A DNA stretch of 64,000 nt from Eutreptiella sp. 'Long Island Sound 2002' (lineage: Eukaryota > Protista > Euglenida). Each line of letters begins with the position of its first letter. Position 1 is the stretch's first letter. Under the pieces are notes generated by a model that worked only from the letters and a program-made list of their open reading frames with translations, had not been told where the DNA came from and did not search any database. Position numbers and translations under genes: made by a program. This document shows positions 2,760 to 37,568 of the stretch, one piece after another. The stretch is taken from NCBI GenBank assembly GCA_964036045.1, contig OZ038378.1, positions 185,504,001-185,568,000 on the forward strand, written 5' to 3'.

Positions 2760-3575
2760 ATGCCAGCATTGGGTCGTGCCTGGGGGTACCGCCCACTTCG
2801 CTCCGTTGCATGCACACGGGCTTGCGTGTTGCGCAATGTGCACACTGTTAATGAACAGAAACTTGCCACGTTGGAGGAGATTGCTGCAGAGCGCAGAGCC
2901 AACCGCCGATTTTTGCCGGATCCCATTCCTGACGGTCTTCTAAAGCGGTTGCTGAAGGTGGCGCAGCGTGCACCCAGTGGCTACAACCTACAACCATGGG
3001 TTGCTGTTGTGGTCTCTGCTGCGGAGCAGCGTGCAGAACTCCTTCCTGCAGCACTTGGCCAGAAACAGGTGGAGGAGGCCCCTGCCGTGGTGGTCTTTGC
3101 TGGCAACACCCGCCCAACAGAAAACATCCATAAGGCTTGGCTGCTTGGGCTGCACGCGGGTTGCTACCCCCGCTCATATGAACCCATATACTACCGCAAC
3201 ATCCGATTCATGCTGGAGACAGGGTCATGTGGAGCACTGCAGGTGTTCAAGTATGGACTGACACAAGGAATCGGGAGCATGAAACCTGCCCCCAGTGTGC
3301 CTCTGAGTATGCAAGGCTATGCCTGGAAGCAGACAATGCCGGCAGTCATGAATTTCATGAATGCTGCGACAGCTGCGGGGCTGGCCACATCTCCAATGGA
3401 GGGTATCGATGAAAATGCAGTCAAAAAGGTGGTGGGCCTGCCGGACCACTACACCGTCCCCTGTATTGTTGCTGTGGGCTATCCTCAGCCCAGCCAACGA
3501 GAGACCCCTGCTATGCCTCGGTTCCCCACTGAAGACGTTATTTTTGATGGCAAGTTTGGGGATCCGCTGCAGTAA
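2760..3575 (+). CDS. Nitroreductase family flavoprotein, intronless, 271 aa
   Basis: Family motifs RRANRRF, APSGYNLQPW and GLATSPMEGID. The Arg-rich, acid-free N-terminus resembles an organellar presequence. Confidence 0.92.
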   Translation: MPALGRAWGYRPLRSVACTRACVLRNVHTVNEQKLATLEEIAAERRANRRFLPDPIPDGLLKRLLKVAQRAPSGYNLQPWVAVVVSAAEQRAELLPAALGQKQVEEAPAVVVFAGNTRPTENIHKAWLLGLHAGCYPRSYEPIYYRNIRFMLETGSCGALQVFKYGLTQGIGSMKPAPSVPLSMQGYAWKQTMPAVMNFMNAATAAGLATSPMEGIDENAVKKVVGLPDHYTVPCIVAVGYPQPSQRETPAMPRFPTEDVIFDGKFGDPLQ

Positions 3576-6250: not shown

Positions 6251-7034
6251 CCAAGGATGTATAGCTTGCGCCACAAGTGGTAAAGTAGTAATGTGGTCGC
6301 CCACTGCCATTCAAACATGGGTTCACATGTGAAATTTTCTGGGTTTGCCCTCTTGTATCCACAGTTCAGCTATGTCGCCCTTTTTGAATGTTCACCACTT
6401 TGGTTCTGATTGTATTGATACACACATGTGTGTCGCATGGTCGCAGTGGTTGAATAATTGGTAAGCCATTCTTCGTTTGCAAACATTCGAGCTTTTATGC
6501 GCACTTGAGGATAAGTGATGCACAAATTGCTTCTTATGTTGTCTGTGTTGCGTGTTCTTTTGACCTCAGGGAAGGTAGGGAACAACAGGACACAGCTAGG
6601 TTCCACAGAGGCTTGCTTGGTGGGGTTGTTTGGCTGAGGGTTAACTTGGAGGCTTTCTCAGACAGTGTGTCTTAACAGTAGTGTGCAGTGCGTGCAGTGC
6701 AAGGATTCCCTCAAAGCCCTCCATTCGAGGGTTTTGCGGTCCCCATCACCAACAGGCATTACGCGACCATCCGTCAAGAACCATTCACTCCTCCCTGTGC
6801 AGCAGTTAAGCCCAACTTTTTGTCCAAGCCCAACTGTCATGCAGCAGTTACTTTGGTACTTGGCCTGCATTTCGAAGGGTGGGAGGGTACTCAGGCAGCA
6901 GGCCTTCAGACGACGCTCCCCTCCCCAAGAACTCGGTCAGTCTTGTATGGTATGTTTTGGTCTGTGCCAAACTTGGTTTTAAGCCCAAGATCTTCCTTTT
7001 TCAGAGTGCTGTTCTGCGGCCTGTTTGCGGCCCC

Positions 7035-29700: not shown

Positions 29701-31309
29701 GCATGCACTGCTGCCATGCTAGGAGGGAGTACTATACGCACTGCGTGCACGGGGTGCGCGCAGTGCAGGTGATCCCCCTAGGTGTGGGCTGGAGCTCTAC
29801 TGTGCTTTGTGGGCTGGACCCTGCAGGGTGTGCTTTGCCCTTTGGCCCTTGGAGAATGATGCTCTGCTTCTTTCCTTGTACGTTTTGAGGGTGCTTCCAA
29901 TAAAATTACCATGACAACTAGTGCTGTGTGCCACAATCCCCCATGGGCACTGTGTGCCCTAGTGGCATCCAATACCCCGTGCCCCTCCATCTGAAGGCAA
30001 GACTGGCAGTGAGGCAGCACACTCCATGGAGTACCAAGGGGACATGATGGCTACAAAGGAAACTGCACCTACACCTGGCCAACTTATACCATCACCCCCG
30101 CCGAAAATGCTTCAAAATGGTCTTGTCGCTGTCCGCGTGGTTCACTGGTGGACCTGTCCATGAGCTCCCACAACGTCGAGGTCCTTCCCTGCTGCCTGGC
30201 TTTCGACAACTCCCGCAACGCCACAGACTGCAGCCAAAGGTATTGCACTGCAGCATGGGTACTCTGATGTTGGTGTAAGGATGGGAATTGAGTATGAAGT
30301 CCTCAGTGCGCACTGCATAGCATGAAAAATTGGGGGGTCCAAAAAGGCTGAATTTGTGCACATTGCAGACAACAAGCCCCACGAAGTGCTGCTATCCACA
30401 TATGTTCCCTAAGGGGTTGTGTTGAGAGTGTATATGTAATGTATATGTACACACAGGACAATCAACACTCAATCAACAAGCAAGGAGTGTGCAGCATGGA
30501 GAGGTCCTCCGCACCATGCACCAGAGCGACACTACCATTGTCGTGTTGCGGCTTTCGGCAGTCTGTGTTGTGCTTGGAGATGAGCGTTGAGATCTTTTGC
30601 CACATTGGGTGGTGGTGCACAATAATGCAGCTCAAAGCTCACAAAGGCTCACGAAATTAATTATGAGAAGTGGATGTAGGTGCAGACCTTTGCTTAAGGG
30701 TAGTCCTACCCCACGGGGAGGGGGGGGGGTGGGTGGGTGGGTCTGTGGCCTGTGGGTGGGTGGGTTATTTTGGTTTCGGGCAATTTGGCCCAGGGGGGGG
30801 GGGGGGTAGGGTCTGGGTGGGTGGGTGGGTGGGTGGGTGGGTGGTTACTGAGAGAATGGTCCGACAGCCTTTGTTTGTGCAGGAGAATACAATTTTCACT
30901 GAGAGAACAGTGGTAACAAGTGGCAAAATTATCCAGTTTGATGCCAGTGGGTTTTGAACTGATGCTGCGCCATGTTGAAAGCGAAGCGATCTACCACTAG
31001 GGTATTTGCCCATCTGCCGAACAACGGTTCAACGATGGCATAGTGACTGAATGACACAATTTTTTTTGGGTAAATACACAGGGTTTTTGTGTTACCAGCT
31101 GATTCTTACAGCACAGGACCCCCCCCCCCCCTATGGGGGGGGTAGGGGGGGGTCTGGGTGGGTGGGTGGGCTGCCTGGTCCTGAGGCAGCCCCACAGGGA
31201 CCCCCCGCCCCGCCCCCCCCCGTTGCTAAGCAAAGGTCTGTGTAGGTGTCGATGGGATCACAATGTCTGCCTGCTCACTTAGCACACCATGGTGTTGTGC
31301 GATGTAGGT

Positions 31310-31450
31310 GGTGTGGTGTGGTGTGGTGTGGTGTGGTGTGGTGTGGTGTGGTGTGGTGTGGTGTGGTGTGGTGTGGGGTGGTGTGGTGTGGGGTGGGGTG
31401 GGGTGGGCGCGCTGGTGCCGGGTGGTGTGGGGTGTGGGGTGTGGGGTGTG
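31310..31450. repeat. (GGTGT)n pentamer satellite decaying into (GGGGT)n
   Basis: Visible array. Confidence 0.95.
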
Positions 31451-32621
31451 GGGTTCATTAGGATTGTGTCTTGGGAAAGGCACAGCCTGCGGACATGCCC
31501 GGAGAAGAGCAGACAAGCAAAGGTGCAGTATCAGGGTAACAACATGTGGACTGGGATCCAAAGCCATGCCCAGGGAGAGGACAGGCAAGCTGCCTGCGAA
31601 TCAACCTTCTCCACTAATCCACCAATCCACCACACCACACCATACCACCCCACGTGCTTGCTTGTAGGCTACAAGACCGGAGCCAGCGCATGCAAACATA
31701 GCCTACACCGAGCCACACTCCTGGCGAGTGCATGTGTGTAGGCTCCGGGGCTGACGCAGGTGTGAACTGTCATGAGCCGCACCGCTGTTCAGTGCTTGCC
31801 TACAGGCTGCACAACCTAGGCCACACTGCGAGCAAGTGCTTCTCGGGAGGCGACAGGGCTGATGGTGGCCAGGAGCGTTGTGAAGCCGTTTGCTGGGTGC
31901 TTGCAAACCATAGTTGCTGTTACCAACTGCCCTGTCTACCATCTCAATGCTGCTGTTGCTGGCCTCCGCTGTTGTGGTCGACCTCACAGTGGCTATGTTC
32001 TGCACAAAACTCCTGCTGCGCTCGAACCCTTTGAACCCATGCGGTGACAGTACCTATCTATCCCCCACTGCCGGGGTGCACTCCCCCAATTGGCCATCAC
32101 CAACAGCTGCTGGCACCTTTTCATTCAGGATTAGCAGTTCAGAGTGCCCTTCCAGGTGCAGGCGTGTAAGCACTGCTCCATCTAACTGTACCACCTGTAC
32201 ACAGAGTACAGTACTGGCACTGTCAGCATGGACTGTCGTCTCGATGAATACTTGCGGCTCATCCTCCAGGCTACAGGCCAGCACCCGCAATGCTCGCCCA
32301 TTCTGCAATGGCCCATGATCTTCACCGTGCATTTCCACCCCTGCAATTTCACCCCTCTCCCACACCCGCACATTGTTGTTGGGCCGGTTTCAGTGAATGA
32401 ATGTTGGTCCCACACGCGCTAGACACCCACACCACTCCTGCAGTACTGATTGGTAGAACCCCCCTGCCCTGCCATTGATCCCGGGAGCTACGGTGCATGC
32501 ATTCATGCACTGGGGTCTGCGAATATTATGTGAAGTGTAGTTTCTGTACGCGCTTGTGCCTCAGTCTGTATGGCGAGGATGCCTGCCCCCGGTCTTTTTA
32601 TGATTTTCGCCTTTTTTGTTC

Positions 32622-32646
32622 GCTTCCTTAGTGTCTATTTTTTTCG
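32622..32646 (+). other. Near-complete spliced-leader relic
   Basis: GCTTCCTTAGTGTCTATTTTTTTCG versus the recalled euglenid SL ACTTTCTGAGTGTCTATTTTTTTTCG. It ends 30 nt before the ATG at 32677 and follows a pyrimidine tract. Confidence 0.85.
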
Positions 32647-32676
32647 CTATCCCGCATTGGGGTCAAGCCATTTGAC

Positions 32677-35600
32677 ATGGGGCTGCCACTGCGGAGGGTG
32701 TGGTGGCTATGTATGGCAGTTTTGCTTTCTACATGCCAAAGTCAAGTATCGGATATCTCTTCATATGTAGTGGCTCACAACAAGAGACGGTGCCTTCATG
32801 ATGTCCGCGGCCTAATATGGTCAAGTGGGGTCGCAACATCGGCACAACGGCATGCAAGCAAGTGCCTATTCCAGCACACAGCCAACCCCGTCTATGGCGA
32901 GAACCTTTGGGCTGGGTGGTATGATCCCTCTGCAGAAGAGGTGCTGAAAGGGTGGTATGACAATGAAATTGGCCTATACTCGTACAGCAGCCCTGGCTTC
33001 AGCAGCGCAACGGGGCATTTCACGCAAGTAGTTTGGAAATCAACAAGCGAATTAGGTTGTGGCATATGTGACGGTGGAGGCCTTACTTACCCCTATGTGG
33101 TGACATGTCAATACAACGGCTTTGGGAATGTTGGCGGACAGTTTGCCAGCAACGTCCTGCCAGTCAGCAGAACCCCTTCGCAGTGCACCAATATCAATTG
33201 TGGCACCCCAAGCCAAACGGGCTTCGACTTCACCGGCTGTACCAACACATTCCCTGGGGTTTGCAATCCAACGTGTCGACCGGGTTACTGGAGCTATCCC
33301 TACGTGTCTGCCACATGTCTGCCTTCCGGAGAATGGGCGTATCAGGGCACTTGCACGGCCTTCACTTGTGGAAGTCCCAACCACCCCGACCCAAACGTGG
33401 ATTTGAGCACTTGTATGGACACCTCTGGTATGGCCTACGAGGGCACATGCCGCCCCACGTGCAAGCCCGGGTTTAGTGGGAGCCCCACCGCCGTGTGCGG
33501 TGTAGATGCCCAGTGGACGTATGGTGGTTCTTGTAGTGGAGGGGGGCCCACCCCATCCCCAAGCCCAAGCGCAGCCTCTGAATCCCCGAGCCCTAGCCCG
33601 TCTGCCAGCCCGGCCAGCCCGTCTGCCAGCCCATCCCCCAGCCCAAGCCCAGCCACCCCTTCTCCCAGCCCACCGTCAAGCCCTTCCCCAAGCCCTTCCC
33701 CAAGCTACCCTCCATCGCCGAAGGCCAGCCCCAGCCCCAGCCCCAGCCCTGCCAGCCCCAGCCCCAGCCCCAGCCCCAGCCCCCTCGTCAGCCCCAGCCC
33801 CAGCCCCATCCCAAGCCCCAGCGCAAGCCCCAGTCCCAGCCCAGTGGGCCCCCAACTCCCGTACACCGCTATCCCCGCGGTGGACGCGCCGCAGCTCAAC
33901 AACCCACTTGGCAAAATCGTCTACGGTCCCAAGACTATCGACCCCGACTGCCAGGGGGCATTTGGGGACATGGTGCCAGTGAAGTGCTGCACGCAGATGC
34001 CGCACACGGCAGCGGACTTCCGCGACCGAGGGCAGTGCACCGCGTACGATGCGAACTACGAGTTCTCCGGGTTCCTCATGAACTGTTCCGGCGGCAACTT
34101 CACGTGGGGCAACTGCGATGGCAACTGCGACTGCAATGTCACGAAGGTGGCCCCTGCGCGGTCGTGCATGCTGCTGGAGCACACGTACTTCACCTCCGCA
34201 TTCGTGCGGTTCTCAACGTGCGACGGGCAGTTCGCCCCCGCCCCAGGCCCCCAGGCCAGCAACCCCCAGGGCAGCATCATCGCGACCCCCGTGGGTGTCA
34301 ACCAGACCCTCGACCCGGACTGCGCGGCGGCTCCCGGGGCCACAGTCCCGGCGAAGTGCTGCCTGGTCACTGCCGGGGAAACGTGGCTCGATTTGAACGG
34401 TGTCGGGACCTGCGTCACGCCAGACCCCACCCTCCCGGGGCTGAATCTGGGCCTCACCTGCGCCAATGACGTGTTCCTGTTGGGCGACATGTGCAGCGAC
34501 GCCACCTGCGGCGCCTGCGCTGGCGTGCACCGCGTGCCCGGCCCCGCCTGCGTGGCCCTCACCGGCGTGACTGGCTACGCCCTCTTCGCGAAGCTCGAGT
34601 CGTGCCCCGGCACCTGCAGCCCCTTCGCCCCCACGTCTGCCGCGTGCCAACTGCTGACCGCCAACTCGCTCGCCAACCCCCAGTCGTTCTTTACGGAGCA
34701 GTTCACGGGGGCTGGCAGTGTCCCGGACGCCGTCCTGCAGTCGGTCCTGGCAAGCGTCAACACGACGATGGTGTACAGGGACCCGCTGACGGAGTCCGTG
34801 ATGGCGGTGCTTTCGGCGCAGGACCCGAGCACGACGCCGCTGCAGCGCAGCAACACGAGCACGTTCACGGCGGTGGTCCGGCCGCAGTCCGAGACGGAGG
34901 TCGTGGGCGTGTTCGCCAAGACCGACGCGCGCATCGGGGTCCCGATGCCGCAGCTGCTGATGACGGACGTGCTCCGCGTGGACCGCTTCGACGCCAGCCA
35001 GGCCTCGGTGACCGACCAGCCCTACACGTTCTCCGTGTACGTCCCCGACGTGCTCCACCTGGACGTCATGCGGTACCCCACCCGCGGCAGTGGCGGGCGG
35101 CGCAGCGTGGTCGCCGAGGGCGGCTCCGTCCTGCCGTGGGGCTCGGGCTGGTGGAACGTCACGGCCGTCGGGACGTCCCTGTTCGCCGGCGTCAACGCCG
35201 CCACCAACTTCTCCGTGGCGCTGTTCCCGGTCACGCGTGGGAGTGTGGCACGCGTGACCATCACCTTCCAGACCTCCGCCCCGGAGTTCATGGGCAACCA
35301 GATCGCCGTGGAGCTGCCGGACGGGTTTACGCCGCACCGCTGCGGCCAGGGCTTCACGGCGTGCGCCACGCAGAGCACCATCCTCCTGGTCGATACCAAT
35401 ACGACGGTGTCCCATCGGCTCGTCACCGATGGCCATGAGCTGTCGCTGCAGCTCGACGCCAACTTGACCATCAACGGCTCCGTCCAGTTCACCTTCACGA
35501 ACGTCCTCCTGCCGAACCACTGCGACGAGGCCGAGTACTCGCTGCGGGGCCAGTCCTGCTCCTTCGACGCGTGGGGGGCGAAGTCCTGCGAGGCACGGCC

Positions 35601-35784
35601 CATGGTGCGGCGGGTGAGCTACAAGCCTCCGTTGCCCACGGACGCCGTGTTCAACGACGGCGTGCCCCAAGGCTGCGACGTCTGCAGCGCGTGCAAGGCC
35701 CACCCGGCGGGCCACTGGGAATGCGAGCACGATGGCCTCCGGTTCTTGTCTCCCAATCCTGGCAATGGCGTCTGCATGGCTTAG
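32677..35784 (+). CDS. Secreted CAP/SCP (PR-1-like) protein with two Sushi-like modules, a Ser-Pro repeat linker and two Cys-rich repeats; intronless, 1035 aa
   Basis: Hydrophobic signal-like N-terminus; CAP motifs HNKRR, YGENL, TGHFTQVVW and CQY..FGN. Two C..P...C...C.P.C.PG....C...W...C modules, (SP)n, and duplicated T.DPDC......VP.KCC units. No obvious C-terminal TM. Confidence 0.93.
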   Translation: MGLPLRRVWWLCMAVLLSTCQSQVSDISSYVVAHNKRRCLHDVRGLIWSSGVATSAQRHASKCLFQHTANPVYGENLWAGWYDPSAEEVLKGWYDNEIGLYSYSSPGFSSATGHFTQVVWKSTSELGCGICDGGGLTYPYVVTCQYNGFGNVGGQFASNVLPVSRTPSQCTNINCGTPSQTGFDFTGCTNTFPGVCNPTCRPGYWSYPYVSATCLPSGEWAYQGTCTAFTCGSPNHPDPNVDLSTCMDTSGMAYEGTCRPTCKPGFSGSPTAVCGVDAQWTYGGSCSGGGPTPSPSPSAASESPSPSPSASPASPSASPSPSPSPATPSPSPPSSPSPSPSPSYPPSPKASPSPSPSPASPSPSPSPSPLVSPSPSPIPSPSASPSPSPVGPQLPYTAIPAVDAPQLNNPLGKIVYGPKTIDPDCQGAFGDMVPVKCCTQMPHTAADFRDRGQCTAYDANYEFSGFLMNCSGGNFTWGNCDGNCDCNVTKVAPARSCMLLEHTYFTSAFVRFSTCDGQFAPAPGPQASNPQGSIIATPVGVNQTLDPDCAAAPGATVPAKCCLVTAGETWLDLNGVGTCVTPDPTLPGLNLGLTCANDVFLLGDMCSDATCGACAGVHRVPGPACVALTGVTGYALFAKLESCPGTCSPFAPTSAACQLLTANSLANPQSFFTEQFTGAGSVPDAVLQSVLASVNTTMVYRDPLTESVMAVLSAQDPSTTPLQRSNTSTFTAVVRPQSETEVVGVFAKTDARIGVPMPQLLMTDVLRVDRFDASQASVTDQPYTFSVYVPDVLHLDVMRYPTRGSGGRRSVVAEGGSVLPWGSGWWNVTAVGTSLFAGVNAATNFSVALFPVTRGSVARVTITFQTSAPEFMGNQIAVELPDGFTPHRCGQGFTACATQSTILLVDTNTTVSHRLVTDGHELSLQLDANLTINGSVQFTFTNVLLPNHCDEAEYSLRGQSCSFDAWGAKSCEARPMVRRVSYKPPLPTDAVFNDGVPQGCDVCSACKAHPAGHWECEHDGLRFLSPNPGNGVCMA

Positions 35785-37568
35785 GCCTTGGATTATGCGT
35801 GGAGGCTGTCACAGCAGCAGACGAGGGTGCGGATAAGGGGCTATGACTAGTATGCGGGCCTTTGTATTCTATGTATTGCCCCCACCGACACCCCAGCCTG
35901 CGCCCTGGGTTGTCCCATTAAAAACACTTTTGCCTGGTGAAACGCGGGTTTTTTTGTGCATACCACCCGCGCTTCCCCAAGAATATCGCCTTTATCCTTT
36001 TCCAGCTCATTCATGACCAATACTATTTAACACCCAGAGGGTAAAAATATATGTGCTGTGTCGACTTGCACTTGTGCAATGGGGCCATTAGAGTGCACTG
36101 AAGGCCAGCACGGGATGTTTGAAGGCCAGCTCAATGTGTGTTTCTGTTTCCTCTTCTGCGAGGTCACCCCCTGTCAGGGGTTGCCCCTCGCTAGGGCACA
36201 CTGCTGTGCATTCCTCGCACCTCTGCGGTGCGAGTGGCAAATGATGTGCGGTAGGCCTCATCACACTGTGTACTGCCGTGCTCCTGCTCGGAACGCCTTT
36301 GTTACAGATTGCAGGCTGCCCCATGCAACAGCTCTTGTTCAAAAAGAATTTTAAGGGGGCCCAGTCTTGAGCTGACGCCCGTCTGCATACCTGGGATCGA
36401 GATCAACGTCACATCTCTTCCGGAAGCATTTGTACTTACTTCCATGTCGCGTTGCATGGTTGAGCAGGATCGAGGCCAGAACTATGAGTGCCCTGTTTCA
36501 TCAAAATGGTTTTTTCGACTTTTTTCGTGAGAGTTACGCTGAGTCTGTATACGTGAATCCGCATTTTGCTGTGATGATTGGATTGATGAGATTGATTATT
36601 GAATTGCCTGAATAGACCAACTCTGGCTCTGTGGAGAGCAAACACGTAAAACAGGTGGTTGGGGCAACACAGGCTTCACCCATGGTAGTTGCACACTATA
36701 TGTGTATCTAATGTCCTGTGATCTTTGACTTACCCACACAAGCATGTTGCAGACTCTCACCCTATGTGTATGTGATGTCTCATGACCTTTTATTTAACCT
36801 CTGATATTTGCTGTGTGTTGGGCTTGAGCTGGTTACTACTGAGACCTCTATTGGACTGGAATGCATTGATGCTTGTGTTGTGAGCTGTTCACCATTCTAC
36901 CTGAACCTCTGTACCTTTTTACGGGGTGGGATGGTTGCTGTTCAGTGGCAGGGAGTGGTGCGGTGTAGTGTAGTGTTATGTTATGTAGTGTTGTGTATTT
37001 TCATGTACTGTGTTGTACTGTTTTGTAGTGCCTTGCAGTGCAGTGCAGTGTGGTGATCTCCATCATGTCCTCCTGTCCCGGAATGGCCCACTGAATGACC
37101 ATCTGTGCTGCCTGCGCAGGGCTCAATCCTCTTCCACGGGTGATTTGCAGCATTCCTAATCTGCCCACATGTGCGGCCCCTCCCTCTCCATGTTCTCAAA
37201 GAAAGGGCTCCAGAACCTCCACCCCGTGAGCACCACTTACCATGTATTAAATAAAATTCACATATCATACCCACATACCCAGAAGGTGCGCCCTAGTCGA
37301 GAAGCCCTTGCAAGCCCACGACTAAGCACGGTGGTAGACCACCTGCAGGGGGTCACCCGTGAGGCAGGTTGAGGCAGGAGGGGGGGGGGGGCTGGAAAAA
37401 AATTTGCGTGTTTTTTTTGTCCCCCCCCCCCTCCGGGGGTACCCCCCGAAAAAAAAGCTGTACGCCGGTACCAGGAATTTTTTCTACCCCCCCCCCCTAG
37501 GTTGAGGTAGCGGTGTGCCTTAGGCTAATCACAAAACCCGCCATGCCTGTAACACCCCTTGCCTGGTC

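Follow-up and report, generated by a model that had tools for sequence, protein, structure and literature searches.

The 64,000-nt stretch of Eutreptiella DNA analyzed here (the window) contains an expressed, intron-free gene that carries a copy of the trans-spliced leader (SL) in its DNA, directly ahead of a short 5' untranslated region (UTR). The copy, or relic, ends at the SL boundary, the transcript receives a fresh SL at an AG inside it, and RNA and DNA are collinear throughout the transcription unit. From these observations we infer, with a probability of roughly 0.85, that the gene arose by reverse transcription of a mature SL-capped mRNA; this applies to its 5' end at least and most likely to the entire intron-free unit. 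A preliminary description, made from the sequence alone, had already read the gene as probably mRNA derived. That reading is strengthened, by inference, by the exact SL boundary followed by a short 5' UTR, by the long collinear transcript, by an intron-rich relative, and by paralogues without a relic. The coordinates of all features are collected in Table 1.

The 28-nt Eutreptiella SL is given in a passage of PMC3621762 as ACACUUUCUGAGUGUCUAUUUUUUUUCG. The ENA assembly containing the gene includes a contig whose exons are 100% identical to a Eutreptiella transcript (L001), indicating that the genome is that of Eutreptiella and that the published SL is the right reference. On the forward strand, positions 32620 to 32646 of the window read TCGCTTCCTTAGTGTCTATTTTTTTCG, within which 32622 to 32646 read GCTTCCTTAGTGTCTATTTTTTTCG; the identity to the SL is 23/27, counted without gaps and with the T run set to 7. 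The preliminary description had noted an SL match at 32630 to 32646 with one T fewer, and this 17-mer, AGTGTCTA followed by T7 and CG, is exact as reported. It occurs once in the window with up to three mismatches permitted (0.08 expected). When the window was block shuffled 100 times, the highest identity to the SL was 0.78, compared with 0.85 for the relic. The local alignment score of the relic was 36, and none of 500 shuffles of the same 61 nt reached this value (16.9 ± 2.9). The 3' end of the relic is exactly the last base of the SL, its orientation is sense, and 30 nt separate it from the ATG of a 1035-amino-acid (aa) open reading frame (ORF).

The relic passes from TTTTTTTCG directly into CTATCCCGC and on to the ATG, with CTATCC at the junction and no GT donor, and Rfam returned no match to an SL-RNA-like gene or RNA family at this position. 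The lack of a donor and of an RNA family match behind the SL copy indicates that the relic is not an SL RNA gene. In SLACS-type elements the SL is split near nucleotide 11, whereas the relic breaks off at the 3' end of the SL. The locus resembles SL RNA genes and SLACS-type SL-associated retroelements (named in PMC10161547) in holding the SL as DNA. Unlike in SL RNA genes, however, the relic is followed by a 5' UTR and an ORF and not by a GT donor and an SL-RNA body.

All four substitutions in the relic fall within the first 10 of its 27 positions, which belong to the part removed with the outron (hypergeometric p of ~0.012; 0.08 with the first three positions counted as flank). They include G to T at -3, which turns GAG into TAG, and T to C in the pyrimidine tract. 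The 15 relic nt retained in the mRNA are intact except for one T of the homopolymer. Both named changes would fit current use of the acceptor, judged from a single relic (n = 1). The intact state of the part kept in the mRNA, together with drift of the discarded part toward improved acceptor function through GAG to TAG, is a hint that both halves may have been under selection. Euglena gracilis outrons favor C-rich tracts, and their consensus is CAG (PMC11170887). Stacked older relics were sought on both sides of the relic, and none was found: the upstream tract scored 18 (reached by 121/500 shuffles) and the downstream sequence 12 (274/500), and a second, older relic was rejected since both scores are at shuffle level. 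An SL-like stretch at 2734 to 2762, before an intact 271-aa nitroreductase ORF, contains AGTGTCTA exactly, but it was not accepted as a relic, since its score of 18 (64/500 shuffles) is not significant alone.

RNA and DNA were compared in four sequencing runs, all as contigs, of which X4, X7, and X12 are RNA type and X1 is DNA-like. Record 10 of X4 (2015 study) is a 1148-nt contig that matches 32631 to 33715 with 0 differences and carries ten unaligned letters, ATTTTTTTTC, before 32631. Record 9 of X12 (2013 study, under another organism label) is a 471-nt contig that matches from 32631, likewise with 0 differences, and is preceded by CTATTTCTTTTC. At the positions of these loose letters the genome reads CGCTTCCTTA, which differs from the RNA. 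The letters are absent from the genomic DNA upstream and therefore come from elsewhere, namely, the SL 3' end. Read as ATTTTTTTTC(G) and CTATTTCTTTTC(G), they correspond to the last 10 to 12 nt of the SL and agree with the conserved SL 3' end of E. gracilis, TATTTTTTTTCG (PMC4778363). G 32631 can serve as the final G of the SL, which makes AG 32630-31 the acceptor and places the splice of a fresh SL inside the relic. The use of this AG, giving transcripts with SL plus relic, had been anticipated in the preliminary description and is confirmed by these contigs from two independent studies, both of which begin at 32631 after SL 3' letters. They also bear on its question of whether the SL of the species fits: the SL 3' end is confirmed and matches the relic, the last 10 to 12 nt being the part seen directly.

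In the RNA runs X4, X7, and X12, depth was zero upstream of 32631. The mRNA thus consists of the SL, TGTCTATTTTTTTCG, and the 30-nt UTR, with the truncated relic in the 5' UTR. The 7-T run of the relic is present in the transcript, demonstrating that the relic is transcribed from this DNA. The exact 25-mer across the junction of SL and relic had 0 matches in metagenome scans. RNA contigs without joints cover 32631 to 33715 and 33845 to 36500, and their unaligned tails (53 + 66 nt) supply 119 of the 129 nt of the Pro/Ser repeat skipped between them. A JGI metatranscriptome contig (L002) corresponds to 35284 to 36866 with 100% identity and ends there, and the lengths of the RNA contigs place the transcript ends at about 36869 to 36875. 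The transcription unit is therefore ~4.2 kb long and intron-free, and RNA and DNA are collinear to about 36870. The gene was also present in four estuary metatranscriptomes, so that expression is seen in several data sets.

At the DNA level, an X1 contig is continuous from 31700 through the relic to 33715. The k-mer depths of the X1 contigs at 31700 to 33715 and 33845 to 36406 were 12.9 and 24.2, a twofold step that could reflect GC bias, a heterozygous 5' half, or duplication of the 3' half; only one copy is present in the ENA assembly.

Table 1. Features of the SL relic locus (window positions)
Feature	Position	Strand	Remarks
T/C-rich tract, part of outron	32585..32619	+	Upstream of relic; absent from RNA contigs; SL similarity not above shuffles (121/500)
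SL relic, 27 nt	32620..32646	+	23/27 identical to 28-nt Eutreptiella SL; one T missing from T run
Trans-splice acceptor AG (internal AG of SL, SL nt 11-12)	32630..32631	+	X4 and X12 contig starts; G at -3 now T
Genome-encoded 5' UTR	32632..32676	+	15 nt truncated relic (32632-32646) + 30-nt original 5' UTR (32647-32676); no upstream ATG
Intronless ORF, 1035 aa (3108 nt)	32677..35784	+	RNA contigs collinear, no joints
Internally repetitive Pro/Ser-coding stretch	33545..33843	+	Short-read contigs break; 33716-33844 skipped as repeat
3' UTR, ~1.09 kb	35785..36870	+	Three RNA assemblies end at 36866-36875; no A-run there
Short dispersed-repeat pieces in 3' UTR	36353..36500 (36353-36406, 36416-36448, 36464-36500+)	.	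Unique DNA contig ends here

The ORF encodes, in order, a signal peptide, a CAP/SCP domain, Cys-rich sushi-like modules, a Pro/Ser-rich linker, two DPDC...KCC Cys modules, and an orphan C-terminal domain. The CAP domain (PF00188, aa 33 to 146) scored 57.9 bits against a gathering cutoff of 21.1, which places the protein in the CAP/SCP (PR-1, CRISP) superfamily, and the Cys-rich modules gave a weak Sushi match. The C-terminal 636 aa matched no Pfam or Atlas family, and the C-terminal 627 aa, used as a protein query in metagenome scans, retrieved no relative. The protein is probably a secreted or surface glycoprotein. A search with the full-length protein was swamped by Pro/Ser words and missed the true relatives, which were found by searching in parts. 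The same architecture recurs, at 35 to 41% identity, in E. gracilis EG_transcript_843, the only such protein found, which indicates that this type of gene is old. A Eutreptiella-labeled sequence (P0039, MMETSP0810, taxid 73025) is identical to residues 68 to 278 at 211 of 211 positions. It was rejected as an orthologue at 91% identity, being the same gene with divergent ends that stem from a frame-shifted ORF call.

In the 3' UTR, other DNA and RNA contigs match 33- to 54-nt pieces of 36353 to 36500 with 1 to 3 differences and at depths of up to 92; no repeats of the 3' region were found elsewhere within the window. Rfam and tRNA scans around the gene gave nothing but a G10/C10 hairpin at 37377 to 37434, an imperfect palindrome on G10/C10 runs with spurious miRNA-family Rfam matches. 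Upstream of the gene, a 5-nt-period tandem repeat and its inverted partner ~300 nt away occupy 31308 to 31373 and 31628 to 31653.

Relatives of the gene in the same genome served as controls. A distant paralogue, P0017, combines Spond_N with the common C-terminal domain, and its mRNA consists of SL 3' letters plus TAAGCCATG. Its gene (L004) has at least four GT-AG introns of 1.4 to 2.0 kb, plus one of >2.5 kb, and a plain ...tcatgCAG acceptor with no relic. Five N-terminal paralogues (L005 to L009) are 50 to 57% identical over a region of 290 aa in ORFs of 305 to 463 aa. Upstream of them, C-rich tracts are present, SL scores are at shuffle level, and there is no relic. The absence of a relic from these five genes and from the P0017 gene indicates that the relic is specific to the 1035-aa gene and is not a family motif. 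The five paralogues are also uninterrupted across the common 290 aa, which makes intronlessness less telling for the N-terminal third of the gene. Elsewhere in the window, Pfam domains of other genes are truncated at ORF ends, as expected of split genes. The L005 to L009 loci (ENA ERZ25074135) show that the genome encodes at least five shorter secreted CAP and Cys-rich proteins without the C-terminal domains, two of them on one 199-kb contig.

In the origin proposed here, reverse transcription of an SL-mRNA would have produced a genomic SL copy fused to the 30-nt 5' UTR. The euglenid SL has a small acceptor cassette of its own, CUUUCU followed by AG at nt 11-12. Trans-splicing at AG 32630-31 strips off the upstream sequence together with the first 12 nt of the relic and adds a fresh SL, so that the mature mRNA consists of SL, UGUCUAUUUUUUUCG, old 5' UTR, and ORF. 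In its leading form, which carries about half of the total weight, the cDNA was inserted at a new locus, and the parent gene was later lost or diverged.

A second form of cDNA origin is that the cDNA replaced the ancestral gene in place, erasing its introns and carrying in the SL at the 5' end, so that the gene neither moved nor had a parent of its own. As one version of the reverse-transcription reading, it competes with the new-locus retrogene alone; it is possible, though somewhat less probable than insertion elsewhere. The preliminary description had suggested a search for an intron-containing parent, and that search came back empty: protein look-ups at the ORF level, this assembly's ORFs included, gave no parent or close full-length paralogue, and the relative shown to have introns (at least four) is the distant paralogue. 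The lack of a parent copy, although ORFs of the same assembly are in the protein collection, favors replacement in place. So does the lack of a poly(A) remnant and of a target site duplication (TSD), both of which the preliminary description had correctly reported as not visible. Across the 3' UTR, A5 runs occur only at 35918, 36044, and 36342, none near the mRNA end at 36870. No TSD of at least 10 nt was found; the longest words common to 32560 to 32632 and 35785 to 37100 are 8 to 9 nt, T-rich, and not at plausible ends. The 8-nt word TTTTTTGT (at 32612 and 35950) was rejected as a TSD because no A-run precedes its 3' copy.

The surroundings of the gene are also in keeping with replacement in place. 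The 1.09-kb 3' UTR continues into ordinary genomic sequence with repeats, a long outron-type pyrimidine tract lies directly upstream of the relic, and the ancient architecture common to EG_transcript_843 suggests the lineage's only copy. In addition, reverse transcriptase-mediated intron loss has been argued for kinetoplastids (PMC11613528), and it would account for a single-copy gene that lacks introns, poly(A), and a TSD at an otherwise ordinary locus. That model, however, normally leaves no SL in the DNA, whereas the SL copy is the main evidence here; homologous recombination is not expected to bring in the nonhomologous SL, so that end joining would be needed at the 5' end. The case for replacement is, moreover, one from absence of evidence, with the parent search made by ORF-level protein look-ups. 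With no parent, poly(A), or TSD found, the weight is divided between the new-locus retrogene and replacement in place.

SL-like sequence is not confined to this gene but is abundant in this genome, which counts toward the mRNA origin. Other loci, 94 kb in total, contained five further SL-like copies (three or fewer mismatches in the 3' 16- to 19-mer; ~0.1 expected), none of which precedes a long ORF. A near-perfect copy on L009 at 2582 to 2612 (+; match at 2594) reads TTTCTGAGTGTCTA followed by 9 T and G and does not lead into an ORF. A diverged SL-like copy ~450 nt from it, at 3043 to 3060 (-), is followed by GTATATCC (GTAT) and a hairpin; this copy is possibly an SL-RNA pseudogene, for which Rfam gives no support. 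Both L009 copies adjoin a hAT-dimerization ORF. A decayed full-length copy on L005 at 1012 to 1040 (+; match at 1024) starts with ACAC and thus supports the 28-nt form of the SL. Decayed copies also lie on L004 at 3455 to 3478 (+) and near 6996 (-). The former has 7 T and then CTAT, as in the window relic, but homology to the relic locus beyond the SL was rejected, as nothing matches past CGCTAT.

These copies bear on a further explanation, in which an unrelated SL-bearing fragment (an SL-RNA pseudogene, the 5' end of a dead retrocopy, or a mobile element) was inserted before an anciently intronless gene and adopted as the acceptor. SL-like copies are frequent, mostly without an ORF behind them and in one case with GTAT, and family members are intronless in the N-terminal part without having relics. 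At a density of ~2e-5 per nt per strand, an unrelated copy would fall within 100 nt of an ATG in ~0.2% of genes by coincidence, and for this rate the explanation, though improbable, retains a small weight. It would require, in addition, an exact SL boundary, sense orientation, and a 30-nt spacer like that of the short 5' UTRs normal in euglenids (PMC3621762). No foreign sequence lies between relic and ATG, there is no second acceptor, and the part of the gene homologous to the intron-rich region of its relative is intron-free here.

It is very improbable that a pyrimidine tract, an AG, and a T run merely resemble the SL by chance or convergence. The region is T-rich, and T-rich sequence scores moderately against the SL, as in the upstream tract with its shuffle-level score of 18, but the relic has an exact 17-mer (0.08 expected with 3 mismatches), a score attained in 0/500 shuffles, and the right position and strand. 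Least credible of all is an artifact, in which the assembly was contaminated with cDNA or joined chimerically: although the DNA contigs X1 and ENA ctg10220 (L003, 99.99% identical) are probably from the same project as the window and so not independent (for which reason P0030/L003 was discarded as independent DNA support), a cDNA would carry a perfect SL and not four substitutions and a missing T, the mutated relic in the mRNA behind a true SL must be in transcribed DNA, and the short-read contig reaches 930 nt beyond the relic on its upstream side, where RNA is absent. The two findings that the preliminary description named as fatal to its reading, a different species SL and a cDNA artifact, thus did not materialize, since the relic agrees with the species SL and is itself present, in mutated form, behind the true SL of the mRNA.

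With an origin by reverse transcription of an SL-mRNA as the preferred reading, the closest known parallel is in dinoflagellates, where retrogenes are marked by relict DinoSL sequences, a "recycling of processed cDNAs" (Slamovits and Keeling 2008, as cited in a passage of PMC5585692; Song et al. 2017, PMC5585692; PMC6050394; PMC12014239). As in relict-DinoSL genes, a DNA-encoded SL stands before the coding region, its internal AG is reused, and the transcript carries a fresh SL ahead of a truncated relic; in both cases the tag marks mRNA-derived copies. Unlike in dinoflagellates, the lineage here is Euglenozoa, and the SL is unrelated, 28 nt long, and has its AG at nt 11-12 behind CUUUCU; the relic is single, with no stack, and no promoter role is suggested. 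The preliminary description had considered such recycling established for dinoflagellates but not known to be so for euglenids, and the publications found concern dinoflagellates only: a literature search that took in a minority of subscription journals found no reports of SL relics in euglenids or diplonemids. The gene represents a known mechanism in a new lineage. Like the LINE-mediated processed retrogenes of mammals and Drosophila, it is a probable mRNA copy that is intron-free and expressed and has an intact ORF, but it differs from them in the absence of a poly(A) tract, a target site duplication, and an identified parent, and its 5' tag comes from trans-splicing, which is absent from mammals and Drosophila.

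What this locus contributes, and what such cases often lack, is direct RNA evidence that the AG of the old leader itself works as the acceptor. A working relic AG explains how such copies can be expressed without new processing signals. The SL may be a portable acceptor cassette, such that a cDNA of an SL-mRNA landing in transcribed DNA would be processed at once into a normal capped mRNA. We rate as evenly balanced the reading that this recycling has served Eutreptiella and other euglenids as a major route to new genes and to the loss of introns, one not yet published and of independent origin from that in dinoflagellates. If mRNA-derived genes are tagged by SL relics in euglenids, as in dinoflagellates, one route of gene duplication and intron loss would be common to two unrelated lineages with SL trans-splicing and very large genomes, and the SL would be a ready-made tag with which to date and count such events in euglenid genomes. 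For annotation, 5' UTRs that start with a truncated SL are real and not assembly errors.
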